Part shown: one piece after another, positions 15,662 to 40,514 of the stretch
How the letters are laid out: each line of letters opens with the position of its first letter
How positions within the stretch are numbered: position 1 is the stretch's first letter
IMG/VR virus record: IMGVR_UViG_3300032236_001850
Coordinates: 186,001 to 250,000 of that record
Reading direction: 5' to 3' (one strand)
Length of the DNA stretch: 64,000 nt
Notes under the pieces: model-generated
Told to the model about the DNA's origin: nothing
Database searches by the model: none
Seen by the model: the letters and a program-made list of their open reading frames with translations, nothing else
Translations under genes and position numbers: made by a program

Positions 15662-15729
15662 AAAGAGCCATCGGCTCTTTTTTTATGATATTTTGTTTGG
15701 ATATATAACATAAATTAAATTCAAACAAA

Positions 15730-23507: not shown

Positions 23508-24101
23508 TTATCTAAGTGAAATTAGATATTTAGTTTGATCTATTGATCCAAGTATTTCATCAATTATATTAAGTATTTCTGAGTCTTTTTCCTCATCGAA
23601 TAATTCTCTACAATCAACTCTATACCATTGGTAAAGCTCATTCATAAATTTGGATAAATCTCCACTCTTAGGATCAGCAAAATTGTACAATTTTATATTG
23701 AGATCTTCACCCACAAGTGTTGGTCTACCGTATTTACCCATTACCGTTTCCACTAAGGTGTCACCGTTATCAATCATTCTATTAAAAAGCTTATCCAGTG
23801 CCTTATGTTGACCATATAGCAAGCATTGCCAATGTAACAATTTAGTCTGTGAGATGTTTCTTAAAACTGTACTAACCATCTTGCCATATTTTGTTTCACC
23901 GTCACCAGATTCCTTTCCTTTAGCTATCACCGTTCTGAAATCCATACCTTTGTCAGGAATTGGGAGTGGTCTTGGTTCAGGAAAATCCTCGGCAGGAGGT
24001 AATGCTCTTTGAGGTTCATCAGCAATCTCTATATCTTGTTTGCTTCTTGGATCTTTGATAACATCCCCGAATGCACTAAGATTTAATACTCTTGGGTCCA
24101 T
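23508..24101 (-). CDS. ferritin/Dps-like four-helix protein
   Basis: LHWQ......HKALD...D.LVE..MGKYGR, NIIDEI. Confidence 0.7.
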   Translation of the reverse strand: MDPRVLNLSAFGDVIKDPRSKQDIEIADEPQRALPPAEDFPEPRPLPIPDKGMDFRTVIAKGKESGDGETKYGKMVSTVLRNISQTKLLHWQCLLYGQHKALDKLFNRMIDNGDTLVETVMGKYGRPTLVGEDLNIKLYNFADPKSGDLSKFMNELYQWYRVDCRELFDEEKDSEILNIIDEILGSIDQTKYLISLR

Positions 24102-24209
24102 ATAATTAGATTATTTTTACATTATATATCCAATTAACAAAATTCTTTATTGAATACAGAAACAAAAGATCAATATATAGCTTAAATAAAACAATAAATA
24201 TTTTTAACC

Positions 24210-24662
24210 ATGGAATGGAAAAGTCTAACTACGAAAAAGTCCATCGACCTATCTAGCTACTTAGCTGATTGGATGGCAAACAACCCTGAAGACAAGATCT
24301 ACATAGGGTGTGATTCGCAAAATCACAACGGCACTACGACATTCGCTACGGTTATTGTATTACATCAACCGAACAGGGGAGGACACGTGCTTTACAGCAA
24401 GATGACAATACCTAGAATACAAGCTAGGTACGAAAGGCTGTGGAAGGAAATCGAATTAAGTGCAGAAACAGCACACGAAATTATGGAGAATGCTGGGCAA
24501 ACTCCTGACTTCATTGATATCGACCTTAATCCAGATCCTAGACATCAATCTAATACGCTGTTAAGATCCGCTGTAGGTTTAATAGAGGGTATGGGTCTAA
24601 AGGCTAGATACAAGAGTGCATCTAACTGGTCCATCTCTATTGCAGATTCTATATGTAAATAG
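24210..24662 (+). CDS. RNase H-like YkuK/DUF458 family protein
   Basis: IYIGCDSQ, RLW.E...S, DIDLN, AD. Confidence 0.85.
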   Translation: MEWKSLTTKKSIDLSSYLADWMANNPEDKIYIGCDSQNHNGTTTFATVIVLHQPNRGGHVLYSKMTIPRIQARYERLWKEIELSAETAHEIMENAGQTPDFIDIDLNPDPRHQSNTLLRSAVGLIEGMGLKARYKSASNWSISIADSICK

Positions 24663-24928: not shown

Positions 24929-25059
24929 ATCAGAATAAGGTTTATATCTAAAGGGTCTAGTTTACTAGACCCTTTTTAATTTAAAAAAGATTCAAAAATA
25001 TTTTTTTATCTCGAAAACATTTCATATATTTGCAATGTAATTAAAAATAAAATAAAACT

Positions 25060-25133
25060 GGCCCCGTAGCTCAGCTGGATAGAGCATCAGATTTCTAATC
25101 TGAGGGTCGAAGGTTCGAATCCTTCCGGGGTCA
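25060..25133 (+). tRNA. tRNA-Arg(TCT)
   Basis: Full cloverleaf; loop TTTCTAA. Confidence 0.95.
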
Positions 25134-25147
25134 CTAAATTAAAAATT

Positions 25148-25243
25148 GGGTATAATTACTACAATGTCTGACATAATCAATTGGTAATCCTAGGGAGGAG
25201 TAAGTCTGTACCAGTAGTTTGGGTTCGAGTCCCAATATATCCA
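25148..25243 (+). ncRNA. tRNA-like RNA (acceptor stem and T arm, non-canonical core)
   Basis: GGGTATA/TATATCC-A, TTGGG-TTCGAGT-CCCAA. Confidence 0.55.
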
Positions 25244-25305
25244 CAAATAAACTAAAATGAAAAAACGATACGATATGCATTAGGTTTAATATAACCAAAT
25301 GCAAA

Positions 25306-25554
25306 ATGTCAAAAAACAGAAACAGAGCAAAGCTCAACAAGTGTTTAACTCCAAGAGAGTACAAATTAACATATCTAAAGCATGAATATGATTATTGCTT
25401 TACATGTTGCAAAAGAGCTGGAAGCTTTTATTATGATTGTTCTCCCATGTCAATGAAAAAGAAAGGGAGACACGGAAACGGTAAAATAATTTCTACATTT
25501 GATGCTAGATCTTATAGAACCTGGAAGCATACTAGAAGAACACAGTATAAATAA
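25306..25554 (+). CDS. basic Cys-containing protein
   Basis: C..CC motif; R.YRTWK..R..QYK. Confidence 0.6.
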   Translation: MSKNRNRAKLNKCLTPREYKLTYLKHEYDYCFTCCKRAGSFYYDCSPMSMKKKGRHGNGKIISTFDARSYRTWKHTRRTQYK

Positions 25555-25561
25555 TAACCCT

Positions 25562-25634
25562 GCCCGGGTGGTGGAATGGAAGACACGCTAGTTTTAGGCA
25601 CTAGATTTTGAGGGTTCGAGTCCCTCCTCGGGTA
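25562..25634 (+). tRNA. tRNA-Leu(TAG), short variable region
   Basis: Cloverleaf; loop TTTAGGC. Confidence 0.85.
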
Positions 25635-25841
25635 CAAAATACAAAAAAATGAAAGTAGATATAAATTACGTAAGCACAAAGCATTTTCCGATTAACAAGT
25701 TGGGATGGTGGGCATTTTACTTTAAGAGGTATACCTACATTAGAGGTTTTAATTTAAGAATATTTGGGATTCATTTCAACATAAGAGAAGCCCATGCAAC
25801 TGAAAAACTTTTGAATTTCAGTAAATAGTAAATCATAAAAT

Positions 25842-25920
25842 GCGTTTGTGGTGGAATGGTAGACACGCTAGTTTAAGGAGCTAGTGCTTAGGCGTGGGAG
25901 TTCGAGTCTCCCCAGACGTA
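25842..25920 (+). tRNA. tRNA-Leu(AAG)
   Basis: Cloverleaf; loop TTAAGGA. Confidence 0.85.
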
Positions 25921-25933
25921 CAAAACTATAAAA

Positions 25934-26203
25934 ATGCCAGAAGTACATATAATTGATAGCATTCAGGGTATGGGATGGAATAATCCAAATGAATCTTTAC
26001 CATCATTTGGTAAATATGTTTTAGTATTTGGGATCGACAACTCTATGTACGGAATTGAAAATTTCCACGTTTGTAGTATGGACGACCTAGAGGATGGCAT
26101 GGAATTTTTAGAAACCGGAAATTTTTACTGGTTAACTGAATCTGGTAAAAAGATAGATAGTGTTAGAGCATGGACACATCTTCCTGACTCACCAAATATA
26201 TAA
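25934..26203 (+). CDS. DUF551-like phage protein
   Basis: W......LP...VLV ... V.AW..LP..P. Confidence 0.6.
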   Translation: MPEVHIIDSIQGMGWNNPNESLPSFGKYVLVFGIDNSMYGIENFHVCSMDDLEDGMEFLETGNFYWLTESGKKIDSVRAWTHLPDSPNI

Positions 26204-26211
26204 ACACATCA

Positions 26212-26637
26212 ATGATCTCAATCTACTTAGACGACACTAGAACGCCATTAGAACACCCTTTAGGTAAAGAATGGATCACAGTAAGAGATTATGATCAATT
26301 CGTTGATTTGGTCTCTAAAACAGGCTTAAACAACGTAGAATTAATATCATTGGACCACGATCTTGGTCCATTAGCAGTAGATCATTTCTTCGGACACACT
26401 AGAGAAAATTACGAGATAATATACAAATGGATTCCGGAGAAAACAGGAATGTGTGTTGTTAAGTGGTTAATCAAACACGCGAGAGAAAACAATTTGGATC
26501 TTCCACAGTGTTATGTTCATAGTGCTAATCCAATAGGATCTGGCAATATGATGGGTTACATCAACATGTATCTCAAAGAAAGAAGAAAGGCTCAGAACTG
26601 CATAAGAGCCAAATGGAAGCACAACTACATAAAATAA
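26212..26637 (+). CDS. cyclic-phosphate-processing receiver-like domain protein
   Basis: YLDD.R.P, ISLDHDLG, TG, HSANP.G. Confidence 0.8.
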   Translation: MISIYLDDTRTPLEHPLGKEWITVRDYDQFVDLVSKTGLNNVELISLDHDLGPLAVDHFFGHTRENYEIIYKWIPEKTGMCVVKWLIKHARENNLDLPQCYVHSANPIGSGNMMGYINMYLKERRKAQNCIRAKWKHNYIK

Positions 26638-26662
26638 GAATGCGAATCCGGATATATAACGG

Positions 26663-27349
26663 ATGAAACATTTACAACTATTCGAAGAATTTACATATTC
26701 ACAAGAATCACTAAACGAGGATCTTCTTGCTGATATAATTGATAAAGCAAAAAAAGGTGTGGCTGCTGGAGCTCTAGTTGCTGCCCTATTAGGTTCACCC
26801 GATGTTAGTGCACAGGATAAAACTGCAATCCAACAAGCAAACCAAAAAACAGAAGCTCCACAGGAAGCCAATGGTGTTGGAGTTGGTATATCGCCAGACC
26901 TTTCATTTTCAAAGGACATCTCACTGACAAGAGCTATAGCTGATCTTGCAAAAAATTTACCAGATGGCACAACACTATCGTATGAGATGGTTGATCAAAA
27001 AACAGTTATGGAAGGTAAAAATTATAAGACAACAACAATTCTAAAGATATCAGCGGATGGTACCAAAGTGAGTCCAGCTCAATTGACAATCAAGAAAAAA
27101 TTGGTCGTTAGAGATGATGCTAGACTTAAAAGAGAATCCCACATGGAGGATGTTAATGCTGAACTTCTTGCAAGAGCTAAAAGATTTGGATTTGATACAG
27201 TTGAGGAATATATGGCTTGGCAAGAGGAAAGAAATAAAGGTAAGGACCAGCCATTAGATGGCTTGGAAGGACCAAATTTCTCACATGGAAAATGTGGTAT
27301 CTCTAAAGCAGGAGCAAAGGATGCTAAAAAGGAGTGGAGTAAAAAATAA
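26663..27349 (+). CDS. putative virion protein
   Basis: MKHLQLFEEF...LNE; GATATATA upstream. Confidence 0.7.
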   Translation: MKHLQLFEEFTYSQESLNEDLLADIIDKAKKGVAAGALVAALLGSPDVSAQDKTAIQQANQKTEAPQEANGVGVGISPDLSFSKDISLTRAIADLAKNLPDGTTLSYEMVDQKTVMEGKNYKTTTILKISADGTKVSPAQLTIKKKLVVRDDARLKRESHMEDVNAELLARAKRFGFDTVEEYMAWQEERNKGKDQPLDGLEGPNFSHGKCGISKAGAKDAKKEWSKK

Positions 27350-27353
27350 AGAT

Positions 27354-27599
27354 ATGAAACATATACAGAAATTTAATTCTACATTGCTCGAGGATGCAAT
27401 GAATAAAAATACTAACACTTCACTAAGAACCGTTTTGGTAACATATGAAGGAAAAGAAATGAAAGCCCTTGCGATAGGATACGGATCCGGACCATATTTC
27501 GTGGAAAAATACTATATTCTTGAGGATACCCCCTACGACACAACAGATTTTGATGATGTGAAAGAGATCAACCCGGAGGAAATAATTAAAAATATTTAA
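27354..27599 (+). CDS. putative virion protein
   Basis: MKHIQKFNSTLLE. Confidence 0.6.
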   Translation: MKHIQKFNSTLLEDAMNKNTNTSLRTVLVTYEGKEMKALAIGYGSGPYFVEKYYILEDTPYDTTDFDDVKEINPEEIIKNI

Positions 27600-27698
27600 A
27601 AAAATCAAAAATAATTTTTTTTATTCGAAACTTTTTCCTAAATTTGCATAAAATATTAAAATCAACTAGATATATAAATCTATAATTTAAAAAACTCA

Positions 27699-27827
27699 AT
27701 GAAAACAACTTTCAGAAATATTGTAAAACCGTTTATGCCGCAGAGCGTTGCACCCTTTAATCAGGTGGGCATTGCCAAATGGTATAATGGGTACAGCAAG
27801 GGATCTGGAGGTCACAATATAATTTAA
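27699..27827 (+). CDS. leader peptide 1 (42 aa; not in ORF track)
   Basis: MKTTFRNIVKPFMPQSVAPFNQVGIAKWYNGYSKGSGGHNII between promoter and terminator. Confidence 0.75.
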   Translation: MKTTFRNIVKPFMPQSVAPFNQVGIAKWYNGYSKGSGGHNII

Positions 27828-27897
27828 TGTAAAGCACTAGTCAAATAAGCATTAAATATTTTTACTCCAGATCCTAAAAGATCTGGAGTTTTTTTTT
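27801..27897 (+). terminator. attenuator 1: terminator 27864-27897 with antiterminator strand 27801-27810
   Basis: ACTCCAGATC/GATCTGGAGT plus T run; GGATCTGGAG is a perfect complement of CTCCAGATCC. Confidence 0.8.
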
Positions 27898-27918
27898 GAA
27901 TTAGAAACAATAAAAAAA

Positions 27919-27991
27919 CTGGGTGTGGCGCAGTTGATAGCGCGGTTGCTTTGGGAGCAACAGGTCGTCGGTTTGAGTCCGGCCACCCAGA
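27919..27991 (+). tRNA. tRNA-Pro(TGG)
   Basis: Cloverleaf; atypical D loop and T loop (TTTGAGT). Confidence 0.8.
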
Positions 27992-28071
27992 AATGATCAA
28001 AAAGGAATGCTTCCACGTAGCGATCATTGGTAACATCCGAAAGGATGGCTAGATTCCTTATTAATAGAATT

Positions 28072-28911
28072 ATGAAAGAAATAGATATAATATTAAAATC
28101 CGGTTCAATGGGGGATGCAAGTCTATCCATATATGGTTATTGCAACACTGTGACAACTAGAAAAATCAGAAAGATATTAAATGACAATAATGTATCGGAA
28201 GAAATTTTTATAAAAAATGATAGTAAAAGAAATATAATAACCAAAAAATGCCCGTCATGCGGAAATGAATTTAAAACTAGAGCTGATAAAAAGGAAAGAA
28301 CTTGTTGCAGTATAGCATGTGCAAATTCACATAAACCAAAAAGAATTAAGGACCCATATTTAGTAGGAAAAAAGTCGGAGATAAAAACAGTAAGGAAACA
28401 AATAATTAAAAAAATAGATAGAAAATGTCAACTCTGCGATTCTGACTATATAGGTTCAAAAAAATCTAAATTTTGTTCAGCTATATGTAGAAACCAGCAT
28501 CAATCGGAAACAATGAAATTGAATATTAAAAATGGGATATGCAAGGGTTGGCAATCAAGGAACATAGAGAGCTATCCCGAGAAATTTTTTAAGACTGTAT
28601 TATCAAATAATAACATAGATTTTATATTAAATCATCCAGTTTCAAAAAAATCATTAGGAGTCGATAGCAATGCATATTATTTTATCGATTTTTATATAGT
28701 AAAGGACGGAAAAAATATAGACCTAGAGATTGATGGCAAACAACATAAACTTTTAGATCGTAGAGATAGTGACACTGAAAGAGATATGCTTTTGAATAAT
28801 AATGGATATTTAGTATATAGAATCGAATGGAATGACATAAATTCAAAAGCTGGCAAAATAAGAATAGAAGAAAAAATAAATAACTTCTTAATATTCTATA
28901 ATAAATTATAA
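28072..28911 (+). CDS. free-standing endonuclease, DUF559/Vsr-like, with zinc fingers
   Basis: CxxC...CSxxC repeats; YFIDF, LEIDGKQH, D..RD..L...GY.V.RI.W. Confidence 0.8.
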   Translation: MKEIDIILKSGSMGDASLSIYGYCNTVTTRKIRKILNDNNVSEEIFIKNDSKRNIITKKCPSCGNEFKTRADKKERTCCSIACANSHKPKRIKDPYLVGKKSEIKTVRKQIIKKIDRKCQLCDSDYIGSKKSKFCSAICRNQHQSETMKLNIKNGICKGWQSRNIESYPEKFFKTVLSNNNIDFILNHPVSKKSLGVDSNAYYFIDFYIVKDGKNIDLEIDGKQHKLLDRRDSDTERDMLLNNNGYLVYRIEWNDINSKAGKIRIEEKINNFLIFYNKL

Positions 28912-28916
28912 ATGAA

Positions 28917-29144
28917 ATGGCAACAATAAAAGAAATCGTAAAAGACAACAAAGTTAGATTCTCACATCTAAAGAATGACATCGCTTATTACAATGTTTTT
29001 ATTGAAGGAGCGGATCACACATTTCCAGTTAGACTGAATGATATAGGTGAAGCAACTTTGTTAGCTGAAGATAATGCCATCTTCTTTATGAGATACATTA
29101 GAAAGGCTTTAGAGAACAACGAGTTCCATAAGGCATCTAGGTAA
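28917..29144 (+). CDS. hypothetical phage protein
   Basis: FPV...DIG.AT......AIFFMRYIRK. Confidence 0.75.
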   Translation: MATIKEIVKDNKVRFSHLKNDIAYYNVFIEGADHTFPVRLNDIGEATLLAEDNAIFFMRYIRKALENNEFHKASR

Positions 29145-29148
29145 ACAT

Positions 29149-29219
29149 ACGGGCTTGGTGCAATGGTAGCATACCGGTCTCCAAAACCGACGATGAAGGT
29201 TCGAATCCTTCAGTCCGTG
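29149..29219 (+). tRNA. tRNA-Trp(CCA)
   Basis: Cloverleaf; loop CTCCAAA. Confidence 0.93.
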
Positions 29220-29228
29220 CAAATTTAA

Positions 29229-29299
29229 TGGGATATGGTGTAACGGTAACACAACTGGTTTTGGTCCAGTTATTCCAGGTTCGAATCCTGGTATCCCAA
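29229..29299 (+). tRNA. tRNA-Gln(TTG)
   Basis: Cloverleaf; loop TTTTGGT. Confidence 0.93.
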
Positions 29300-29475
29300 C
29301 AAATAAAATTAAAAAATTATCAAAAAATATTTTTTTAATTCGAAAGCATTTCATACATTTGCGATGCAGATAAAGAAGGATCTTTGACATAATGGAAACT
29401 AAATCAATACGATAAAGTGGAAAAGTTTTAATAAACCAGACAGGTTTATTAAACAAAATGAGCTTTATCATTACT

Positions 29476-29549
29476 GACCTCGTAGCTCAGCTGGCTAGAG
29501 CACCTCACTTTTAATGAGGGAGTCATGGGTTCGAGTCCCATCGGGGTCA
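29476..29549 (+). tRNA. tRNA-Lys(TTT)
   Basis: Cloverleaf; loop CTTTTAA. Confidence 0.95.
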
Positions 29550-29554
29550 CAATA

Positions 29555-29632
29555 GGGATATTGGCACAGCGGCGACTGCACCTGACTGTAAATCAGGCAT
29601 ACCACACGGAGGTTCGAGTCCTCCATATCCCA
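29555..29632 (+). tRNA. tRNA-Tyr(GTA)
   Basis: Cloverleaf; loop CTGTAAA. Confidence 0.9.
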
Positions 29633-29728
29633 CTAAAAATAACCAAACCAAAATGAAAAAGATATTAGACTTTTTATTTGGCTATCTTCCTAAGAATGAT
29701 AGCAACAACATTCTAATGTAAAACAAAC

Positions 29729-29839
29729 GGAGTAAAAGGGCTGGGAAATGCCTGATAGGGTCTGCTTCAGATTCTAGATAGCAAGAGTAAGACTATTAGT
29801 GCTTATCCCAGATAGCGTGGTTCAATTCCAGCTACTCCA
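29729..29839 (+). ncRNA. tRNA-like RNA with a long helix replacing the D and anticodon arms
   Basis: GGAGTA/TACTCC-A; T loop TTCAATT; CTGGGA/TCCCAG; CTGATAG/CTATTAG. Confidence 0.6.
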
Positions 29840-29845
29840 CAACAT

Positions 29846-29919
29846 TCTTCTGTAGCTCCAACGGTCAGAGCGAAGGTTTGTTAAACCTGGGGTTGCTGGT
29901 TCGAATCCAGCCAGAAGAG
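29846..29919 (+). tRNA. tRNA-Asn(GTT)
   Basis: Cloverleaf; loop TTGTTAA; G73. Confidence 0.9.
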
Positions 29920-29930
29920 CAAATTAAAAA

Positions 29931-30003
29931 GGTGCGGTAGCTCAGTTGGTAGAGCACTAGACTGAAAATCTAGGTGTCGCCGGTTCGATCCCGGCCCGTA
30001 CCA
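29931..30003 (+). tRNA. tRNA-Phe(GAA)
   Basis: Cloverleaf; loop CTGAAAA. Confidence 0.95.
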
Positions 30004-30181
30004 CAAACAAAATAGCTATGTACACAAAAAAAGTTAAAGTTGTTATTTACTTCGATACAACATATGAAAGAGCAGAGTATATCTATGTTGACGAAGGAAC
30101 TTCCAAGGAAGATATAACTAAAATGATAAATGAAAAATTCGAGGATTGGTTCTGTTGGGATTCCTTTCCTGGATTATAAAA

Positions 30182-30253
30182 GGGTGGATAGCTCAGCGGT
30201 AGAGCAGCGCACTGTTAATGCGCTGGTCGTGGGTTCGAATCCCACTCTGCCCT
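30182..30253 (+). tRNA. tRNA with GTT (Asn) anticodon and U73
   Basis: Cloverleaf; loop CTGTTAA. Confidence 0.88.
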
Positions 30254-30256
30254 CTA

Positions 30257-30340
30257 GGGTGCCTGGTCAAGCCTCTTACTTCATTGTAACGTAACCAGTG
30301 GGTATAGAGCTAACACGTAATAGTTAGCTCGACGCTACCC
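30257..30340 (+). ncRNA. unidentified structured RNA
   Basis: GGGTG/TACCC closing stem, CTGGT/ACCAG, GAGCTAAC/GTTAGCTC. Confidence 0.45.
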
Positions 30341-30360
30341 AAAAATTTAAAATTATATTG

Positions 30361-31062
30361 ATGGAGGAATCAATTTGCGAAAAATGTTTAAAAGAGCATA
30401 ACGGTAAATATGGAAGCGGAAGATTCTGCTCTTCCTCGTGTTCCAGATCTTTTTCTAGCGTGAAAAATAGGAATGAAACAAACAGAAAAATATCAGAAAA
30501 ACTTAAAATCAATGGTAATGGGGGTATGGTTACGATTGATTGTATATACTGTAACAAAAAATTTACCACCAGAAGACGAGGAAACAGGAATCAAAGATAT
30601 TGCTCAAATTCGTGTTCATCCAGAGATATTTCGGATCTGTCCAGATTGAAAATTTCTGAAAAAATGAAAGTAATAAATAAAGGTGAAAAAAATCCAATGT
30701 TTGGAATATCACCAAAAAATACAAGTAGTGTACAAGCTATCTCTGATAAACACAACGGAGATCCTATATTTAATGTAAGATCCACATATGAAAGAGAATA
30801 TGTGAGATTGCTTAATGATAAAGATTCCGTTCTGTATTTCGTGTATGAGCCAAAAAAATATAGATGTGAATATGAGTTGGAAGGGGTTAGAAGAACCTAT
30901 CAACCTGATTTTTATGTTAAGGAGATTGATATTGAATATGTAACTGAGGTAAAAGCATTATGGCAATTAGAAACAAACGAAACATTAGCAAAGAAGGATG
31001 GATTCATTAGAAAATTCACAATACCATATAAAATATGGACAAAAGAAAACAAGCGGAAGTAG
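30361..31062 (+). CDS. free-standing PD-(D/E)XK (TnsA-like) endonuclease
   Basis: HNG.YGSGRFCS..C, NUMOD3-like GEKNPMFG, YQPDF...EVK. Confidence 0.8.
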   Translation: MEESICEKCLKEHNGKYGSGRFCSSSCSRSFSSVKNRNETNRKISEKLKINGNGGMVTIDCIYCNKKFTTRRRGNRNQRYCSNSCSSRDISDLSRLKISEKMKVINKGEKNPMFGISPKNTSSVQAISDKHNGDPIFNVRSTYEREYVRLLNDKDSVLYFVYEPKKYRCEYELEGVRRTYQPDFYVKEIDIEYVTEVKALWQLETNETLAKKDGFIRKFTIPYKIWTKENKRK

Positions 31063-31125
31063 CTCAATTGGTAGAGCTCCTGCCTTCCAAGCAGGGGGTT
31101 GCCGGATCGTACCCGGTCTTCCGCT
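31053..31125 (+). tRNA. tRNA-Gly(TCC)
   Basis: Cloverleaf; T loop ATCGTAC; overlaps the endonuclease stop codon. Confidence 0.9.
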
Positions 31126-31139
31126 CAAAAATTAAACAG

Positions 31140-31427
31140 ATGTCTAAAGTAGTAAACGTCAAGACCGACCAATATGATGTTTATATAGGAAGACCATCAA
31201 AATGGGGTAATCCATATTCACATAAGGAAGGCACATTAGCAGAGTTTAAAGTTGCTTCGAGAAAAGAAGCAATTGATAAGTATGAGGAATATCTTCTTCA
31301 GAACAACGAGCTAATGGATTCGCTACACGAGATTAAAGGAAAAACTCTAGGATGTTGGTGTAAACCAAAAAGATGTCACGGAGAAATATTAGTAAAATAT
31401 GCTAATAAAGGAAACAAGTTATTTTAA
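31140..31427 (+). CDS. DUF4326 family protein
   Basis: YIGRPSKWGNPY, GKTLGCWCKP..CHG. Confidence 0.88.
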   Translation: MSKVVNVKTDQYDVYIGRPSKWGNPYSHKEGTLAEFKVASRKEAIDKYEEYLLQNNELMDSLHEIKGKTLGCWCKPKRCHGEILVKYANKGNKLF

Positions 31428-31494
31428 AAATATAATAGAACAAATGAAAGCAATCACAGACAGCTCGTAGACCATAATTGTTAGATAAGCAATT

Positions 31495-31728
31495 ATGACT
31501 CAGAAATTGAGAATTTGGAGAGTAGTTCCTACCAGTAAGACTGGTGTTCAGGCTCCCACTTTTTTCGTAGAGACTACGGAAGAAGGACGCGAGAAGGCAG
31601 AGCAATCTGCAACTAAACAAGCAAGACAAAGATCTGGCTTGGGTTCATTTGAAAACTGGAACTTTAACATCACTAAGATGGAAGTTAGAGTTGATAGATT
31701 TGGCAGATACGTCAAACATCACCAGTAA
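31495..31728 (+). CDS. hypothetical protein
   Basis: ORF inside tRNA array. Confidence 0.7.
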   Translation: MTQKLRIWRVVPTSKTGVQAPTFFVETTEEGREKAEQSATKQARQRSGLGSFENWNFNITKMEVRVDRFGRYVKHHQ

Positions 31729-31770
31729 CAGTGATTGTTTTCATAGGTTCAATTTAAAAACCTATGAATT

Positions 31771-31844
31771 GGCGGGGTAGCTCAGATGGTAGTAGCGTTG
31801 GAGTCATAACCCAAAGGTCAGCGGTTCGATCCCGCTCCCCGCTA
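31771..31844 (+). tRNA. tRNA-Met(CAT)
   Basis: Cloverleaf; loop GTCATAA. Confidence 0.88.
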
Positions 31845-31852
31845 CAAAATTT

Positions 31853-31925
31853 GGGGCTGTAGCTCAACTGGCTGAGCGCCTCCCTTGCACGGAGGAGGAT
31901 GTGGGTTCGAATCCCATCAGCTCCA
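31853..31925 (+). tRNA. tRNA-Ala(TGC)
   Basis: Cloverleaf; G3:U70. Confidence 0.95.
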
Positions 31926-31988
31926 CAAAATATTTTTAATAATGAAAAAGAAATTCGACATGTATTAGGTAAAATAACCTAATACAAC

Positions 31989-32219
31989 ATGAAAACAAAA
32001 AAGAGATGGTCTTGGACCGAAGCACAAAGAAGACGCCACACAAAAGGCAGATATCATTATTGGAATAACGTTCCTGCTGACTTCGTTAGACAATTTAACA
32101 AAGCAAACAGAACAAAAGAAAAAGTATCAATGCATGAATTCATCAGAGGTGGAGATCTAGATTTCATAGATTTCACACCAAAGTATTCTAAGAGATGCGC
32201 AGGGTGGATTTATTTTTAA
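31989..32219 (+). CDS. basic hypothetical protein
   Basis: ORF inside tRNA array. Confidence 0.65.
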   Translation: MKTKKRWSWTEAQRRRHTKGRYHYWNNVPADFVRQFNKANRTKEKVSMHEFIRGGDLDFIDFTPKYSKRCAGWIYF

Positions 32220-32229
32220 AATAAGAAAG

Positions 32230-32799
32230 ATGGCAAGAAAAAAAGAAGAAACAGGTTTAAAATTTTATGAGATATCACAAAACAATAGTGGAGGTTCGTT
32301 TATAACGAATGACAAACTATGTCACAGATTATTCATAGAAGCAAACAGCTCAAGCGAAGCAGATTCTATCGCTGAAGATCTTGGATGTTATTGGAACGGT
32401 GTTGATGAAGATATGGACTGTCCGTGTTGCGGAGATCGTTGGTACGGTTCACATTCTGTTGATATAACTTCTATGACAAAAGAAAAAGACAGCAGATATC
32501 CGGTTGAAAGATGGGTTAATGCAAAAGGTCTTAGTGCTGAAGATGAATTGAAAGTATTGCTTGAGCGATATTCAGGAATGGAATGGATTGAAGCTCCATC
32601 GATAAATGAAAAATACGGATCTCGAATAATTGAGGGATCTATTAAACTTAATAGCATAGAAGATTATGTACAGGTAGTTGCTGATCAGTATGGTTGGACC
32701 TATCCGGATGCTAGAATATTCTACTATGACGGAAGGGTAAAAGAGATATTCTCGTCCAATGTGGAAGCACCCAAGAAAAAGAAAAATAAAATAGTCTGA
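32230..32799 (+). CDS. conserved phage protein
   Basis: QNNSGG and DCPCCGDRW. Confidence 0.75.
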   Translation: MARKKEETGLKFYEISQNNSGGSFITNDKLCHRLFIEANSSSEADSIAEDLGCYWNGVDEDMDCPCCGDRWYGSHSVDITSMTKEKDSRYPVERWVNAKGLSAEDELKVLLERYSGMEWIEAPSINEKYGSRIIEGSIKLNSIEDYVQVVADQYGWTYPDARIFYYDGRVKEIFSSNVEAPKKKKNKIV

Positions 32800-32816
32800 T
32801 AGAGATATCAGCAACT

Positions 32817-32891
32817 GGTTCATTAACTCAGTTGGTTCAGAGTGCAACTCCTACAAAGTTGAAGTCATAGGTTCGAATCCTATATGAACTA
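32817..32891 (+). tRNA. tRNA-Val(TAC)
   Basis: Cloverleaf; loop CCTACAA (C33). Confidence 0.85.
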
Positions 32892-32942
32892 CAAGCACAC
32901 AGAAAAGAGAAGGTTCGAAGATATATAGAATAAAAATTAAAA

Positions 32943-33623
32943 ATGTATATTTGCGAAAAATGTAATTCCAATCACAATGGCGAATATGGCTCGGGAAGAT
33001 TTTGTTCACCGAAGTGCAGCAGATCATATAGCACATCATTAAATAGAATATCAATTAATGAAAAAATAGGCAAAGCTATAAAAGGGTCGGGTAATCCACC
33101 ATCCATAAAAAATTGCATATATTGTGGAAATGAATTCATAGCTTCGTGGAAAAGAAAAGATCAAAAAAGCTGTTCAATGTCTTGTTCTATGAAATCCAAT
33201 TGGGAGAATCCTGAATATAAAAAAAATATTACGGAAAAAAATAAAGCAAGATGCATTGATATAAACGAGAGGAACCGGATGAGGGATATTGGTAGAAAGG
33301 GGGGATTTGGGAAAAAAGGTACAACAGAGGGTGGTACCAGATATGATTCAAATCTAGAAAAAATTTGTTTTGAATATCTTGAATCAAAAAATATCAAATT
33401 CGAAGCTCATAAAAATATACCTAATTCATCTAAGATTAGCGATGTATATTTAATAGACCAGAATATCTGGATCGAATTGGATGGAATAAACAGAGAAAAA
33501 AGAAAAGACTGGCTAGGAAAGGATTACGAATACTGGTTAGAAAAAATAATCATATACAAAAGAGAATCCTTAGATATGCGAATAGCATACAATTTGGGTG
33601 ATTTAATTAGGATAATAGAATGA
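32943..33623 (+). CDS. free-standing PD-(D/E)XK endonuclease
   Basis: N-terminus paralogous to 30361; S.LE, SD.Y, WIELDG. Confidence 0.8.
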   Translation: MYICEKCNSNHNGEYGSGRFCSPKCSRSYSTSLNRISINEKIGKAIKGSGNPPSIKNCIYCGNEFIASWKRKDQKSCSMSCSMKSNWENPEYKKNITEKNKARCIDINERNRMRDIGRKGGFGKKGTTEGGTRYDSNLEKICFEYLESKNIKFEAHKNIPNSSKISDVYLIDQNIWIELDGINREKRKDWLGKDYEYWLEKIIIYKRESLDMRIAYNLGDLIRIIE

Positions 33624-33815
33624 GATCCAATTAGTTCGAAAGAGCAAAAAAGGAGGAATAAGATGAACAGACGAAAGTCATCACCAAAGGGTAGAAAATA
33701 GATGTTATTCTGAGTATGGAGCGACGGCTCTAGGAAGGTTCGATTCCTTCACATCACATTTCAAGAGTATGGATAAATGGTGTTAGTAGCGGTCTAAAGT
33801 CTGAATTGGATCTCA
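33621..33815 (+). ncRNA. unidentified ~195-nt structured RNA with T-arm-like hairpin
   Basis: 12-bp closing stem TGAGATCCAATT/AATTGGATCTCA; GAAA tetraloops; GAAGG-TTCGATT-CCTTC. Confidence 0.6.
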
Positions 33816-33905
33816 ATAGGAAATGAAGCTCACAAAGCCCCTCATTTGTAGATCAATTTCGAGCATTTTTGAGCTTAAAGTTGGGTCCACTGTGAGCTTC
33901 AAATT

Positions 33906-33995
33906 GATCGGGTAATATAATGGCAGTATAGGTCGGGGGTCTTACGTGAGTAAGTGGCCTCTGGTCGTGCACAGGTTCGACTCCTGTTCTGATCA
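33906..33995 (+). ncRNA. tRNA-like RNA with extended, GNRA-capped anticodon arm
   Basis: Acceptor, D and T arms present; anticodon loop replaced by TTAC-GTGA-GTAA. Confidence 0.7.
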
Positions 33996-34016
33996 CTAAT
34001 TTTTAAACATTTCGAA

Positions 34017-34406
34017 ATGGACAAGGAAAGATTGGAATCATTAGCTAATAGATTATTGGAGATTCCTGCAAAGGTTGTAGAAGCGCAGTTGGAGTTATTG
34101 ACATTAACTGAAACTTCACAATCCCAATCAGAGAGGATCACTCAGATTGAATCTGTAATTAAAACAGAAATAAGTGCTGCTGTTGACGGAGCTGGTAAAA
34201 AAGCTTATAGCAACGCAGAAGCAAGAGATGCTGCTTTTATTGAAAAGACTACAGATAATTACGAATTATCCGTTGCTAAAACAGATCTTGCTAAAACACA
34301 AAGATCTGTACAGGAGAAAAGAATCAAAATAGAAGCTCTCGGAAACGAACAAAGAAATATAAGAGCAGTTCTTTATTTCATAGGAGGCGGAGAAGGAGCA
34401 ATCTAA
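34017..34406 (+). CDS. coiled-coil hypothetical protein
   Basis: Heptad pattern; YSNAEARDA. Confidence 0.75.
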   Translation: MDKERLESLANRLLEIPAKVVEAQLELLTLTETSQSQSERITQIESVIKTEISAAVDGAGKKAYSNAEARDAAFIEKTTDNYELSVAKTDLAKTQRSVQEKRIKIEALGNEQRNIRAVLYFIGGGEGAI

Positions 34407-34469
34407 GAATTTGTCACCAAGGGTCGGCCCATTGGGGGTGATTAAGAAATACCCATAAACCCCGGCCAC

Positions 34470-34538
34470 GGGATAAAAGCACAAGCGGATGTGCAATCGC
34501 TAAACAGCGAGAGGCAGGGTTCGAGTCCCAATATTCCA
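34470..34538 (+). pseudogene. tRNA-like RNA with collapsed anticodon loop
   Basis: D arm GCAC/GTGC; TCGCT-AAAC-AGCGA; T loop TTCGAGT. Confidence 0.55.
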
Positions 34539-34553
34539 CTAAAAATTGAAAAC

Positions 34554-35027
34554 ATGACACTAAAGGATAAAATCAATGCTGATTATATTACAGCATTCAA
34601 GGCAAAAGACACTGTAGCAAAAAGTGCATTAAGTGGTTTAAAGTCAAAAATTCTAGAAGCTGAGAAATCTGGACCTGCTGGTACAGAGCTTAGTGATGCA
34701 GATGTTTTAAAGATTGTCATAAGCACAATTAAACAAAGAAAACAATCGGTTGAGGAATTTACAAAGGCAGGTAGAATGGATCTTGTTGAACAGGAAACAT
34801 TAGAGCTAGCACCAATTGAAGCTTATCTTCCTAAACAAATGGACGATTCTGAAATCACTTCAGCAGTGAAGGAACTTATAGCTGAGTTTGATGGAGCAAA
34901 CCTTAATATACAAGCTCTTACAGGTAAAGTTATTGGTGCTTTCAATAAAAAGTTTCCAGGTATGGCAAGTCCAGTTAAAGTGAAAGAAATTATTACAGAA
35001 AATATTGTTGAAAAAATTATAAATTAA
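34554..35027 (+). CDS. yqeY: GatB/YqeY domain protein
   Basis: LKDKI..D...A.KAKD, IKQRK.S.E.F.KAGR.DL...E..E...IE.YLPKQM. Confidence 0.9.
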   Translation: MTLKDKINADYITAFKAKDTVAKSALSGLKSKILEAEKSGPAGTELSDADVLKIVISTIKQRKQSVEEFTKAGRMDLVEQETLELAPIEAYLPKQMDDSEITSAVKELIAEFDGANLNIQALTGKVIGAFNKKFPGMASPVKVKEIITENIVEKIIN

Positions 35028-35086
35028 TTTTTTTATTCCGAAAGGATGCCATATATTTGCATCATAATAATTAAACACATTTAAAA

Positions 35087-35260
35087 ATGGCAACAACCCA
35101 AAGAAGATCTAGACAAGCAAGAGCATTGTCTATGTTGGAGGCACAATTGAAAAGCGGTGTTAAAACCGAAAAAGGTACAAGAGATACCAAAATTGCATTA
35201 ACAGACTCTGACGTCAAGAGATTGAATAAAGAGATCGCTATATTGCAATCTAGGTTATAA
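35087..35260 (+). CDS. small basic protein (not in ORF track)
   Basis: 57-aa ORF directly after a TATATTTG promoter. Confidence 0.65.
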   Translation: MATTQRRSRQARALSMLEAQLKSGVKTEKGTRDTKIALTDSDVKRLNKEIAILQSRL

Positions 35261-35264
35261 TAAG

Positions 35265-35431
35265 TTAATTCTCTGTGTGTCCGTAGAGGCGAATTTCCAA
35301 AGTGTAACCTAATACGTGAGAAAGGAAGGCGGTATCTAAGTGCTGATTAGCTGCAACTGAGTCTATAGGGCGATTCAGCGAAAGGGGAAACACATTTATT
35401 GCTACTTGTAGATGGAGGCACGGAGAATTAA
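35265..35431 (+). ncRNA. unidentified ~165-nt structured RNA
   Basis: Closing stem TTAATTCTCTGTGT/GCACGGAGAATTAA with G-U pairs; internal CTGAGTC/GATTCAG. Confidence 0.6.
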
Positions 35432-35435
35432 ATAA

Positions 35436-35509
35436 GGTCCCGTAGTTCAGCGGAAGAATTCCAGAATACGGATCTGGAGACGGGGGTTCGAATCCCTCCG
35501 GGATCTCCA
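35436..35509 (+). tRNA. tRNA-Arg(ACG)
   Basis: Cloverleaf; encoded CCA. Confidence 0.9.
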
Positions 35510-35516
35510 AAAAATA

Positions 35517-35590
35517 CGGTAGGTAGCTCAGTTGGTTAGAGCGTCTCGCTGATACCGAGAAGGCCGGAGGTTCAAGTCCTCCTCTACCGA
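35517..35590 (+). tRNA. tRNA-Ile(GAT)
   Basis: Cloverleaf; loop CTGATAC. Confidence 0.92.
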
Positions 35591-35594
35591 CAAA

Positions 35595-35759
35595 AACGTT
35601 CTTAGAAATATTGGTTAGTGGTAAATTGAAAGGTTACTTCGTTTTTTAGCCCAGTTGGTAGGGCGTAAATTTTTGGTATTTAAGGTCGTGGGTTCAACTC
35701 CCACAAAAACTATTAGCTCCCTTTCTAAATATTCCCTTCCCAATATCTCTAAGCACGTT
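35595..35759 (+). ncRNA. Y-RNA-like unit 1 (colinear tRNA module, TTG loop)
   Basis: AGTGGT..GTTACTTCG..ATTCCCT scaffold enclosing D, anticodon and T arms; near TROVE gene. Confidence 0.75.
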
Positions 35760-35849
35760 AAATTTTAAAAAAATATTGATTTTTTTATGAAACAAAGAGG
35801 ATTTCCTCACATATAAAGATCACAAAACGTTCATTGAAAAGATAATTTA

Positions 35850-35984
35850 TTGTAAGTGGTAACGGAATATGAGTTACTTCGTTTTTTAGCTCATTTGGTA
35901 GAGCAAGAGTCTCTTAAACTTTAGGTAGCTGGTTCAACTCCGGCAAAAACATCCATTGAAACTCACCCGGACATTCCCTTACAA
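35850..35984 (+). ncRNA. Y-RNA-like unit 2 (colinear tRNA module, CTT loop)
   Basis: Same scaffold; TTGTAAG/CTTACAA terminal stem. Confidence 0.8.
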
Positions 35985-37731: not shown

Positions 37732-39312
37732 ATGTCACGTTACAACCAAAAAGTAAAAAGAACTGTAGAGACAGTTACAAACCACCAAGGTGGTACAGGT
37801 GTGAAGTATGATCCAAAATTGGAATTAATTGCGATTCTTACTACTGGATTAGACAATTCATACTATGAAAAATTATCGGATAGAGAGAACAGATTTGTTC
37901 AACTTATTGACGAATTATCTAAGAAAGATATCGAATTCGTCGCGAAAGCGCTCGTATACGCGAGAACTGTTGTTGGTCAAAGATCAGTAACACACTTCGG
38001 TTCGGTGTCATTAGTTAAGCATTTATCAGGTTCTGCTATAGGTAGAAGATTCTTCTCTAAAAGAGATAAGAATGCTAAAACCGGAGGTATTGTATACCGT
38101 TTAGATGACGTATTAGAGATCATCGCAGCTTACCAACACTTCAATCCAGGTAAACCATTACCTAACTCGATGAAGAAAGGTTTCAAAGCAGCTTTGGAAT
38201 CAGCTGATGCGTACGAATTAGCTAAATATCAAGGTAAAGGTAAAGCAGTTTCGCTTGTAGATGTTGTTAACTTGGTTCGTCCAAAACCAACAACACCACA
38301 AATGGAAGGTGTTTTCAAAGATCTTATGACTGGTAAATTAAAACAGTTCAACACGGTTGAGGATAAAAACTCAAAAGCTGGACAAGATGTTGCTGCAAAA
38401 GTTAAATCTGGAGAAATCACTAAAGCACAAGCTGAGATTGAATTGACACAGTCTAAAGAAAGCAACTATGCTGAATTGATTAAAACAAGAAAAATTGGTT
38501 ACTTGGCATTGCTTCGTAACTTAAGAAACATCATCAACACGAGTTCAAACTCTGAATTGGTTAGCGGTGCATGTGAACTTTTAATCGATGAAAAATTGAT
38601 CAGAAAATCTTTGGTTTTCCCTCACCAAATCGATATTGCTTTGGAGATTCTTTTACAAGAAACTAGTGCTTCTGCATCCAGACCATTCGTTACAGCTTTA
38701 AATAAAGCCTACGAATTAGCAATACCAAACTTGGTTGAATTGTTCTCACACGGTAGAACAGCGGTTGTTATAGATACATCTGGATCTATGCACGGAATGG
38801 GTCACGGTGTTAAAATGAATGGTAAAGCTATCAATAAACACTGTATCGATAAGGCTGCTCTTATTGGAGCAACTTTAGCAAAAGGTATTGGTGCTGATTT
38901 ATATCAATTTGCAACAACAACTGAGAGTATTAGATACAACCCAGGTGATAGTATAAACACTATCAAAAACACATGTTTAAGCTTACAAGGTAGAGTTGGA
39001 CACGGTACGGACTTCGGTTCAATCTTCTCAACTTTACAGTCAAGTGGTAAATATGATCGTATCTTTATCATATCGGATTTACAAGGAGGTGATAGAATCG
39101 TTACAAACAGTTCTTTCCAATCCTATAAATCTAAGCATGGTGAACCGTTCATCTACACGGTAGATATTCAAGGATATGGTACAACCATGTTCAAACCAGG
39201 TAACAAATTAGTTCAACTTTTTGGTTACTCTGCTGATATCTACGAGATGATCAAAAAAGCTGAGATTGATCCAAAAGCAATTTTGAGAGAAATTGAAGCT
39301 ATCGTGATCTAA
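37732..39312 (+). CDS. Ro60/TROVE domain RNA-binding protein with vWA domain
   Basis: LAKYQG....VSL.DV..LV.PKP, ALLRNLRNI, DTSGSM MIDAS, GTD, IISD.Q. Confidence 0.93.
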   Translation: MSRYNQKVKRTVETVTNHQGGTGVKYDPKLELIAILTTGLDNSYYEKLSDRENRFVQLIDELSKKDIEFVAKALVYARTVVGQRSVTHFGSVSLVKHLSGSAIGRRFFSKRDKNAKTGGIVYRLDDVLEIIAAYQHFNPGKPLPNSMKKGFKAALESADAYELAKYQGKGKAVSLVDVVNLVRPKPTTPQMEGVFKDLMTGKLKQFNTVEDKNSKAGQDVAAKVKSGEITKAQAEIELTQSKESNYAELIKTRKIGYLALLRNLRNIINTSSNSELVSGACELLIDEKLIRKSLVFPHQIDIALEILLQETSASASRPFVTALNKAYELAIPNLVELFSHGRTAVVIDTSGSMHGMGHGVKMNGKAINKHCIDKAALIGATLAKGIGADLYQFATTTESIRYNPGDSINTIKNTCLSLQGRVGHGTDFGSIFSTLQSSGKYDRIFIISDLQGGDRIVTNSSFQSYKSKHGEPFIYTVDIQGYGTTMFKPGNKLVQLFGYSADIYEMIKKAEIDPKAILREIEAIVI

Positions 39313-39405
39313 TAAATCACCGTAAACAAAAAAGCCATTCGAAAGAATGGCTTTTTTTATTGTTATGGGAAATGATATATACAATAAAAAAATCAAATCA
39401 GTAAT

Positions 39406-39759: not shown

Positions 39760-39855
39760 TTTTTTCAAAAATATTTTTTTTATTCGAAACATTTCCTTAA
39801 ATTTGCATAAAATATTAAAATCAATTAGATATATAAATCTATAAAAATAAAAATC

Positions 39856-39948
39856 ATGTCACAAATACAGTACATATTAGATACATTACATTTAGATCAC
39901 ACAAGTTCAACTTGTGAATCGTCTATTGTGATGAGGAGAGAGTATTGA
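39856..39948 (+). CDS. leader peptide 2 (30 aa; not in ORF track)
   Basis: MSQIQYILDTLHLDHTSSTCESSIVMRREY between promoter and terminator. Confidence 0.75.
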   Translation: MSQIQYILDTLHLDHTSSTCESSIVMRREY

Positions 39949-40004
39949 TATTAAGTAACGTAATAAATATCAAAAAGGTCTCCTCGAAAAAGGAGGCCTT
40001 TTTT
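39933..40004 (+). terminator. attenuator 2: terminator 39972-40004 with antiterminator strand 39933-39939
   Basis: AGGTCTCCT/AGGAGGCCT plus T run; GAGGAGA is complementary to TCTCCTC. Confidence 0.78.
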
Positions 40005-40035
40005 ATTGTTCATTGAAATATTGTAAAAGTAAATT

Positions 40036-40123
40036 GGAGAGGTGCGCAAGTGGTCAAAAGCGCCTAGACTTGAAATCTAGTGTGAGCTAATTACTCCCGT
40101 GGGTTCGAATCCCACTCTCTCCG
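40036..40123 (+). tRNA. tRNA-Ser(TGA)
   Basis: Cloverleaf with long variable arm. Confidence 0.93.
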
Positions 40124-40237
40124 CTTAGGTTACCCTTCTTGTTCCGTATGGGGTTATAAAGACGAATCAGTCAACGGAGCCCATGATGGTACCTATACCG
40201 AAGAAAATAGGAAAGATTCTATATGTCAGCCCTCAAT

Positions 40238-40323
40238 GGAGAGGAATCCTAAACGGTGATAGGTCATGCCTGGAAAGCATCGGGTGCGGGCAACTGCATG
40301 GAGTTCGATCCTCCTTCTCTCCT
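40238..40323 (+). tRNA. tRNA-Ser(GGA)
   Basis: Cloverleaf with long variable arm. Confidence 0.82.
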
Positions 40324-40331
40324 CAAAAAAT

Positions 40332-40404: not shown

Positions 40405-40412
40405 CTAATTCC

Positions 40413-40495: not shown

Positions 40496-40514
40496 CTAAT
40501 AAAAATTAGTAATC

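Follow-up and report, generated by a model that had tools for sequence, protein, structure and literature searches.

A 434-kb freshwater phage carries, in front of each of its two large tRNA gene clusters, a very short open reading frame (ORF) whose peptide is spelled almost only with amino acids served by the tRNAs located downstream. Each of these leaders is followed by an intrinsic transcription terminator, for which an overriding antiterminator is predicted. The arrangement looks like a ribosome-mediated transcription attenuator that turns phage tRNA production on when ribosomes run short of the corresponding tRNAs, and we consider this reading likely (probability of about 0.75). Unrelated leaders in distant phage contigs follow the same rule (for instance, SSSSSHVSV precedes Ser-Ser-Val-His). 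The mechanism itself is classical, whereas its target, the tRNA arrays, and the many-amino-acid leader appear undescribed.

The window analysed here is a stretch of 64,000 nucleotides (bases 186001-250000) of a complete virus genome of 434,509 bp with direct terminal repeats and 35% G+C, which comes from freshwater or pond metagenomes. All 31 tRNAs called by ARAGORN in the genome lie in this window and form three groups. A small group (Arg-TCT, Leu-TAG and Leu-AAG) is located at 25060-25921. Array 1 (27919-35955) holds 16 tRNAs (Pro, Trp, Gln, Lys, Tyr, Asn, Phe, Asn, Gly, Met, Ala, Val, Arg-ACG, Ile-GAT, Gln and Lys-CTT), with no strong terminator on the + strand before 39328-39357. Array 2 (40036-42985) holds 11 tRNAs (Ser, Thr, Cys, His, Leu-TAA, Ser, Asp, an Ile2-like CAT tRNA, Glu, Asp and an initiator-like CAT tRNA) and is closed by a terminator at 42986-43019. 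The arrays are interspersed with endonuclease-like and other ORFs, and all elements described below are on the + strand.

Leader 1 lies behind promoter 1 (27615-27655), a conserved block, TTTTTTTTATTCGAAAC..., with the -7 box TAAATTTG at 27639-27646 that corresponds to the Bacteroidota consensus TAnnTTTG. The transcription start is predicted at about 27653-27660, and the 5'UTR (27656-27698) contains a small conserved hairpin (27667-27671/27678-27682) that appears in all folds. The leader ORF (27699-27827, 42 codons) starts about 43 nt after the predicted transcription start and encodes MKTTFRNIVKPFMPQSVAPFNQVGIAKWYNGYSKGSGGHNII. The intrinsic terminator (27864-27898), 21 nt before tRNA-Pro, consists of a GC-rich 10-bp stem with a 6-nt loop (27864-27889) followed by T9. 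The preliminary description of this region had pointed to complementarity between the ORF and the terminator, to the amino acid content of the leader and to the identity of the first downstream tRNAs, and all of its sequence statements proved correct. Indeed, GGATCTGGAG (27801-27810, within codons 35-38) is the exact reverse complement of CTCCAGATCC (27865-27874) in the 5' arm of the terminator, and copies the 3' arm, whereas ATTTAATG (27822-27829) and CATTAAAT (27850-27857) are exact complements of each other. The duplex between the ORF site and the arm has an energy of -15.4 kcal/mol, as strong as the terminator hairpin itself (-15.2), while shuffles of the upstream sequence give -6.7 +/- 1.8 and none of 300 does as well. 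The first three tRNAs downstream are Pro-TGG, Trp-CCA and Gln-TTG. Of the 28 sensor codons (positions 5-32, 27711-27794), 27 specify one of the 13 amino acids served by array 1, the only exception being Ser16. Among 1419 small ORFs of at least 28 codons in the genome, only two reach 27 of 28, and only this one also contains all 13 amino acids. The peptide lacks Leu, Asp, Glu and Cys, the tRNAs for which are found in the other arrays.

The accompanying interpretation, a leader switching between antiterminator and terminator and tuned by GC-ending codons to be sensitive to stalling, is partly supported. The evidence for the switch is strong, but the proposal that GC-ending codons tune the leader for stalling is not supported as stated. 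A comparison of codon usage, suggested beforehand as a way to check this point, showed that such codons are rare in the genome, with CCG, CCC, GGC, GCC, GGG, GTG and AGC accounting for 0.10, 0.07, 0.06, 0.08, 0.07, 0.12 and 0.10 of their synonymous sets, respectively. However, the overall codon rarity of the leader is only at the 3.6th percentile of gene windows, and its GC3 of 0.43, against a mean of 0.28, is at the 7.5th percentile. Divergent homologues keep the amino acids but use CCA, CCT, CAA and GCA at several positions where the window has CCG, CAG and GCC, so the GC-ending codons are not a conserved feature, and leader 2 has ordinary codon usage. In addition, the GC-rich codons lie in a conserved hairpin inside the ORF, which explains their composition equally well. 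The correspondence between leader and array is also less complete for codons than for amino acids. Arg6 is AGA, for which the tRNA (Arg-TCT) is in the small upstream group rather than in array 1, which has Arg-ACG. Other codons not cognate to array tRNAs are Thr3, Thr4 and Ser16, as well as GGC, CCC and GCC, which are not read by standard wobble by the U34 tRNAs present here, although relatives do carry Gly-GCC.

The second leader precedes array 2. About 95 nt of promoter and 5'UTR of leader 1 recur almost letter for letter at 39774-39849 (promoter 2 and its 5'UTR, 39774-39855, with the -7 box at 39798-39805), and the 26-nt core of this block occurs exactly twice in the genome. Behind the second copy is a 30-codon ORF (39856-39948) encoding MSQIQYILDTLHLDHTSSTCESSIVMRREY, with a hairpin inside the ORF at 39900-39916, followed by a strong intrinsic terminator (39973-40002, or 39973-40004 for the whole element) and array 2. 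Residues 8-23 form the core, LDTLHLDHTSSTCESS, which uses only Leu, Asp, Thr, His, Ser, Cys and Glu, that is, the amino acid set of array 2. It is the only one of 2396 small ORFs in the genome with a run of 16 array-2 residues. The two leaders differ in composition in the direction of their own arrays (Fisher's exact test, p = 6.7e-5). The match extends to codon boxes. Leader 2 writes Leu as TTA three times, and Leu-TAA is in array 2, whereas the CTN-reading Leu tRNAs are in the small upstream group. Its two early Ile codons (Ile4 and Ile7) are ATA, and array 2 holds a CAT tRNA (42299) that looks like the lysidine-type Ile tRNA. This assignment rests on its near-identity to a CAT tRNA of contig L029 (see below) and on the identity elements C4-G69 and C5-G68, and was not tested separately. 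By contrast, Ile codons in the leader-1 sensor are ATT, and array 1 holds Ile-GAT.

A search with the promoter core retrieved 13 viral and 9 metagenomic loci, each followed by a leader-1-type or leader-2-type ORF, a terminator and the corresponding tRNAs. Many of these loci are close kin, so their agreement is not independent evidence. The frame of leader 1 is open in all 10 sequence variants. Two divergent variants, from loci L002 (with its identical copies) and L034, keep the frame and the amino acid rule while changing many residues. The 14 variable sensor positions carry residues of the array-1 set, however unlike they are chemically (K/I/N, P/N, V/N/I), the only exceptions being Thr and Ser in the window's own clade, and L034 reaches 31 of 31.

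To find more distant leaders, we used as a marker the Ro60-like (TROVE) gene located between the two arrays, which brought in contigs with 28-98% protein identity to it. In these contigs the tRNAs are partitioned differently, and the arrays are preceded by non-homologous short ORFs, each behind a TAnnTTTG box and ahead of a terminator; for the non-homologous leaders, TROVE identity is 31-76%. In contigs L020/L021, the leader KRYTYITLLGTTDKKWADEG (MKRYTYITLLGTTDKKWADEG...) precedes Trp, Glu, Asp, Lys, Lys, Arg, Gly, Thr, Gly, Leu, Tyr and Tyr (across the two contigs: Trp, Glu, Asp, (Ala), Lys, Arg-ACG, Gly, Thr, Gly, Leu-TAG, Tyr, Tyr). Here Leu is written CTT and Arg CGA (L020_A), matching Leu-TAG and Arg-ACG in the array. 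In L019/L020/L021, NIMNISQSFSIMNPFSHNGININVQSP (MKNIMNISQSFSIMNPFSHNGININVQSP...) precedes Ser, Gln, Pro, Phe, Asn, Val, Ile, Ser and His. Contig L029 has three such leaders: one containing VHMSSSSSHVSV precedes Ser, Ser, Val and His, one containing FSFPFP precedes Pro and Phe, and TITIITTIKKAIK (MRTITIITTIKKAIK...), with all five sensor Ile codons being ATA, precedes Ala, Lys, a CAT tRNA with an Ile2-like sequence and Thr. Finally, in L017/L018, peptides of 46-51 residues containing all 20 amino acids (chance 1-2%) precede a single array serving nearly all amino acids. In a 7 x 7 matrix of leaders against arrays, each leader scores highest with its own array, the true pairing is the best of all 5040 permutations, and the Fisher-combined binomial probability is 4e-14. 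This is the strongest evidence that the peptides are read-outs of the tRNA sets. The 634-kb uncultured phage LR745206, the best TROVE match among named records, has no tRNAs within 20 kb of that gene and could not be used.

The position of the predicted antiterminator recurs across leader types. In leader 1, its upstream strand (27801-27811) ends 14 nt before the stop codon and lies partly inside the footprint of a terminating ribosome, its inner helix pairs 27822-27829, which contains the stop codon, with 27850-27857, and its downstream strand is the 5' arm of the terminator (27864-27874). A position-blind duplex search places the best partner of the terminator's 5' arm in the last codons of the ORF, ending 3-15 nt before the stop codon, in 10 of 12 leaders, although several of these pairings are not significant on their own. 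Folds truncated before the 3' arm, which mimic the nascent RNA, show this pairing in 10 of 10 leader-1 variants and 11 of 12 other leaders, usually with an inner helix that includes the stop codon. One variant (L002) and one leader (L029_a) lack a convincing antiterminator, but the divergent variants keep an inner helix with different letters (UUAAG/CUUAA in L002). Because the MAFFT alignment shifts the terminator arms between clades, alignment-based pair counts were not used for the antiterminator, and per-sequence folds and a cross-matrix were used instead. In this matrix, none of 100,000 permutations does as well as pairing of each arm with its own leader's site, a figure inflated by homologous pairs. 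Between clades of leader 1, the site, the 5' arm and the 3' arm have changed together while keeping their places (GGAUCUGGAG/CUCCAGAUCC versus GAGAAUUCGGA/UCCGAUUCUC).

Folding of leader 1 with a ribosome mask behaves as attenuation predicts. The terminator and antiterminator conformers of the whole transcript are isoenergetic (-58.4 and -58.3 kcal/mol), a ribosome at the stop codon gives the terminator 10 of 10 pairs, and a ribosome stalled at codon 5, 11, 19 or 28 gives the antiterminator 10 of 10. Leader 2 is less clear. Its candidate antiterminator (39933-39985), in which 39933-39939 pairs with 39979-39985 and 39945-39952, including the stop codon, with 39966-39973, is weaker than the terminator, forms only in the truncated fold and is not significant against shuffles on its own. 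Equilibrium folding gives the terminator even with a stalled ribosome, so for this leader the argument is kinetic only. As to a structure synchronising polymerase and ribosome, the ORF of leader 1 contains a conserved three-tier hairpin (27721-27799, core 27733-27787), predicted in all 10 variants, which is a candidate RNA polymerase pause or synchronising structure, a role that is inferred. In the alignment, 92.5% of its cells are paired, but covariation is too weak to count, with one pair showing a double change and the rest invariant. A trp-like 1:2 anti-antiterminator (27708-27716 with 27804-27812) is seen in the full-length fold and predicted in the window's clade, but not in L002 or L034, and is not part of our claim; these observations do not settle whether such a synchronising element exists. 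The last conserved element is the motif GTTCATTGA..ATTGTAA between terminator 2 and the first tRNA, the extended form of which occurs only there and before tRNA-Lys-CTT. It has no assigned role but could be a second entry point for transcription.

Contigs assembled from four RNA libraries of rivers and lakes contain a ~97% relative of leader 1. They are short stand-alone pieces of 167-218 nt, two of which start at 27656 and 27660, one at 27639 and one at 27706, and they end at 27832-27878. Such contigs carry no strand information and may include DNA, so they are supporting evidence only. Depth is zero over the neighbouring genes at 27000-27538 and 28001-28847, consistent with an abundant short RNA running from the predicted start site to the terminator. 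The genome encodes three sigma-70-family proteins, but no RNA polymerase of its own was detectable with Pfam PF00562 or PF00940, which fits transcription by the host core enzyme, coupled to translation.

In the model that we favour, region 27615-27898 is an attenuator placed between a host-type promoter and the first large tRNA array, with a sister copy at 39774-40004 guarding the second one. Transcription would start near 27656, and the leader would be translated while RNA polymerase is still on it. If every aminoacyl-tRNA needed for codons 5-32 is plentiful, the ribosome would reach the stop codon and cover the antiterminator strand and the inner helix, so that the terminator forms and a short RNA of about 240 nt is released. 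If any of these tRNAs is scarce or uncharged, the ribosome would stall upstream, 27801-27811 would pair with the 5' arm of the terminator, and polymerase would read into the tRNA genes. Because the sensor codons list the amino acids of the tRNAs behind the switch, the array would be made on demand and shut itself off once supply is restored. The sequence anatomy, its recurrence, the statistics, the folding behaviour and the short RNA-library contigs are what our analysis demonstrates directly; that the ORF is translated, that ribosomes stall, that termination responds to stalling and what triggers the switch are inferred, since nothing has been tested experimentally and the response of termination to aminoacyl-tRNA supply was not measured. 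Sensitivity is also uncertain, because most amino acids appear only 1-4 times in the sensor, whereas classical leaders use runs. Candidate triggers are loss of host tRNAs during infection or through tRNA-cleaving defences. A broader reading, somewhat more likely than not, is that large phages of (probably) Bacteroidota carry a general, modular class of attenuator that takes a census of tRNAs, with every array guarded by a leader listing, codon by codon, the tRNAs behind it and co-evolving with the content of the array. Phage tRNA synthesis would then be driven by demand, responding to loss of host tRNAs during infection or to tRNA-cleaving host defences. This would be the first known attenuation control of tRNA genes and direct, sequence-encoded evidence of what phage tRNAs are for.

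Alternative explanations are all unlikely. The small ORFs could encode ordinary micro-proteins, each with its own terminator, with the tRNA arrays transcribed from separate downstream signals and the peptide and arm matches being coincidences or by-products. Conservation of the central part of leader 1 (FMPQ..PF.QVGIAKWYNG) as protein across clades, the motif behind terminator 2 and the weakness of several individual antiterminators are compatible with this view. However, the composition match recurs in at least seven unrelated leaders and is specific to each leader's own array, substitutions stay within the amino acid set of the array rather than being chemically conservative, the site-to-arm pairing is leader-specific, and no promoter-like box lies between terminator 1 and tRNA-Pro. 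Slightly less likely still, translation of the leader could act with a different logic, through protection of the transcript from Rho or nucleases or through a nascent peptide arresting the ribosome, so that good tRNA supply would increase array expression. Geometry alone does not fix the sign of the response for leaders with a weak antiterminator, such as leader 2, but the masked folds of leader 1 give termination with a ribosome at the stop codon and read-through with an upstream stall, the antiterminator strand is within reach of the terminating ribosome in 10 of 12 leaders, and no arrest motif is shared between leader types. The least likely alternative is a translation-independent RNA switch binding uncharged tRNA, like a T-box, or a phage protein at the 5'UTR, with an incidental ORF: although the promoter and 5'UTR are better conserved than the ORFs and the two conformers of leader 1 are isoenergetic without a ribosome, no Rfam family matches even at E = 10 apart from chance hits driven by the terminator, a single RNA cannot plausibly read 11-16 different tRNAs, and the model does not explain why the frame spells the amino acids of the array or is kept open in all variants.

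Why phages carry tRNAs has been debated for decades, with proposals including codon compensation, replacement of degraded host tRNAs and escape from anticodon nucleases (for example PMC10264068), whereas the regulation of their expression is barely known. A leader reading out the availability of exactly the tRNAs it controls would mean that the phage measures translational shortage and answers it, which favours supply-and-demand explanations and makes them testable. It would also extend leader-peptide attenuation to RNA genes as targets, to sensors of up to 20 amino acids and to hosts that lack Shine-Dalgarno-led initiation. Full-text literature searches found no description of leader-peptide control of tRNA genes, although most subscription journals were outside their reach and absence is not proof. 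Older E. coli work on tRNA-Phe genes (pheU/pheV) might mention attenuator-like leaders, but no support for this was retrieved. In practical terms, the peptide-to-array rule can delimit tRNA transcription units in uncultured phage genomes, and the leaders could serve as compact sensors of tRNA availability. The element appears modular and widespread in one group of large uncultured phages.

The closest known systems are the attenuators of amino acid biosynthesis operons of Enterobacteria (trpL, hisL, leuL, thrL, ilvL, pheL). They likewise have a promoter-proximal short ORF with regulatory codons, an intrinsic terminator and an antiterminator that shares the terminator's 5' arm and has its upstream strand where a terminating ribosome masks it, and thrL and ilvL already sense more than one amino acid. 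The mechanism proposed here matches classical leader-peptide attenuation in four of its structural features, with the pause or anti-antiterminator structure, a fifth, left undecided. Here, however, the regulated genes are tRNAs rather than biosynthetic enzymes, the sensor lists up to 13-20 different amino acids once or a few times each instead of a run of one, and the element is in a phage with a Bacteroidota-type promoter and no Shine-Dalgarno sequence. There is no sequence similarity to these attenuators. There was no Rfam hit at gathering score in the window, and none of the Trp_leader, His_leader, Leu_leader, Thr_leader and Phe_leader families appeared at E <= 10 in 27600-27930. The pheM leader of pheST in E. 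coli applies attenuation to a component of the translation apparatus, sensed through the level of charged tRNA, but controls phenylalanyl-tRNA synthetase through Phe codons only, whereas here the tRNA genes themselves are controlled through many codon types. T-box riboswitches also couple read-through of translation-related genes to tRNA status through competing terminator and antiterminator structures, but bind one uncharged tRNA directly, without a ribosome, and have a stem I with a specifier loop and a conserved T-box antiterminator bulge (RF00230). No T-box hit was found at E <= 10, and the conserved feature here is the open frame. The mgtCBR leader ORFs (PMC3641672) and the polycysteine leaderless ORFs of mycobacteria (bioRxiv 10.1101/834739) show that codon-specific ribosome pausing in tiny ORFs is reused to control diverse operons, but each senses a single amino acid and controls protein-coding targets. 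Among cultured phages, neither leader has a blastn match in 50,697 GenBank phage records, and a megablast search with 26000-30000 found only a tRNA-Tyr match. In the annotated tRNA region of T5, examined as a control, promoters abut the tRNAs and no terminator with a leader ORF precedes an array. The tRNA clusters of T5 (and T4) nevertheless resemble those of this window in that the tRNA genes are interspersed with small ORFs and homing endonuclease genes.

The gene located between the two tRNA arrays, at 37732-39312 (+), encodes a 526-aa TROVE/Ro60-like protein (Pfam PF05731, E = 2e-10) and is apparently part of the same transcription unit as array 1. Homologues of this protein sit next to tRNA arrays in many large phage contigs. 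A search of the window against Rfam found no Y RNA. Genes linked to RNA repair and translation surround the arrays. These are a cyclic-phosphate-processing receiver domain (PF20274; 26212-26637, +), an RNaseH-like protein (PF04308; 24210-24662, +) and a YqeY/GatB-like protein (PF09424; 34491-35027, +). A T4 Rnl1-type RNA ligase (PF09511, E = 2e-18) is encoded elsewhere in the genome (genome positions 23854-24390, G000:C1), but no RtcB was found. This gene content suggests that the phage is equipped against tRNA damage. Endonuclease-like ORFs rich in Cys motifs, one of them with DUF559, are inserted between the tRNA genes at 28027-28911, 30358-31062, 32943-33623 and 43061-43609 (all +). They are present or absent at different places in close relatives, similar to homing endonuclease genes in the T5 tRNA region. 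In addition, one of the three sigma-70 region-2 matches of the genome (18914-19126, -; E = 1e-16, open frame of 303 aa) lies in the window, upstream of the tRNA region.

The small upstream tRNA group (Arg-TCT, Leu-TAG, Leu-AAG) has a related promoter, TCTCGAAAAC..TATATTTGCA, directly before its first tRNA (24990-25059, +). This group has no leader ORF and no attenuator; not all of the phage's tRNAs are under this control. A small AT-rich hairpin (TAGAT-ATATAA-ATCTA) in the 5'UTR, at 27667-27682 and 39826-39841 (both +), is conserved in both leaders and in nearly all relatives. It is better conserved than the ORFs and could be a stability element or a protein-binding site. Another conserved motif, GTTCATTGA(N5-14)ATTGTAA, lies 25-50 nt before tRNA-Lys-CTT (35829-35880, +) and before the first tRNA of array 2 (40008-40036, +). 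These are the only two extended copies in the 434-kb genome, and the motif is conserved at the same places in relatives (related loci L007, L014, L016-L018, L024 and L037). The function of this motif is unknown; it could be a processing signal or a second promoter. In phage T5 (NC_005859), gene T5.072 (15618-15893, -) contains the stretch SWEGWEGEIEWLYFY and lies just upstream of the tRNA cluster Tyr-Glu-Trp-Phe, and T5.070 (14628-14756, -) has five Cys in 42 residues and lies just before tRNA-Cys. However, no terminator or antiterminator of the kind described here is present, and T5.070 looks like a zinc ribbon. This may be coincidence.

The three CAT-anticodon tRNAs look like three different species. 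The first (31771-31845, +) is elongator-Met-like. The second (42299-42374, +) is Ile2-like, since its anticodon arm is identical to that of the CAT tRNA of L029, a distant phage contig, and it has C4-G69; this assignment rests on general tRNA identity rules. The third (42907-42985, +) is initiator-like, with a mismatched first pair and GGG/CCC in the anticodon stem. ARAGORN and Rfam disagree on two further elements. ARAGORN calls a minus-strand tRNA-Ala (24278-24356, -) inside the RNaseH-like ORF 24210-24662, which Rfam does not call, so it is probably false. Conversely, a weak tRNA-like element (36 bits) inside array 2 (42715-42781, +) is called by Rfam alone.
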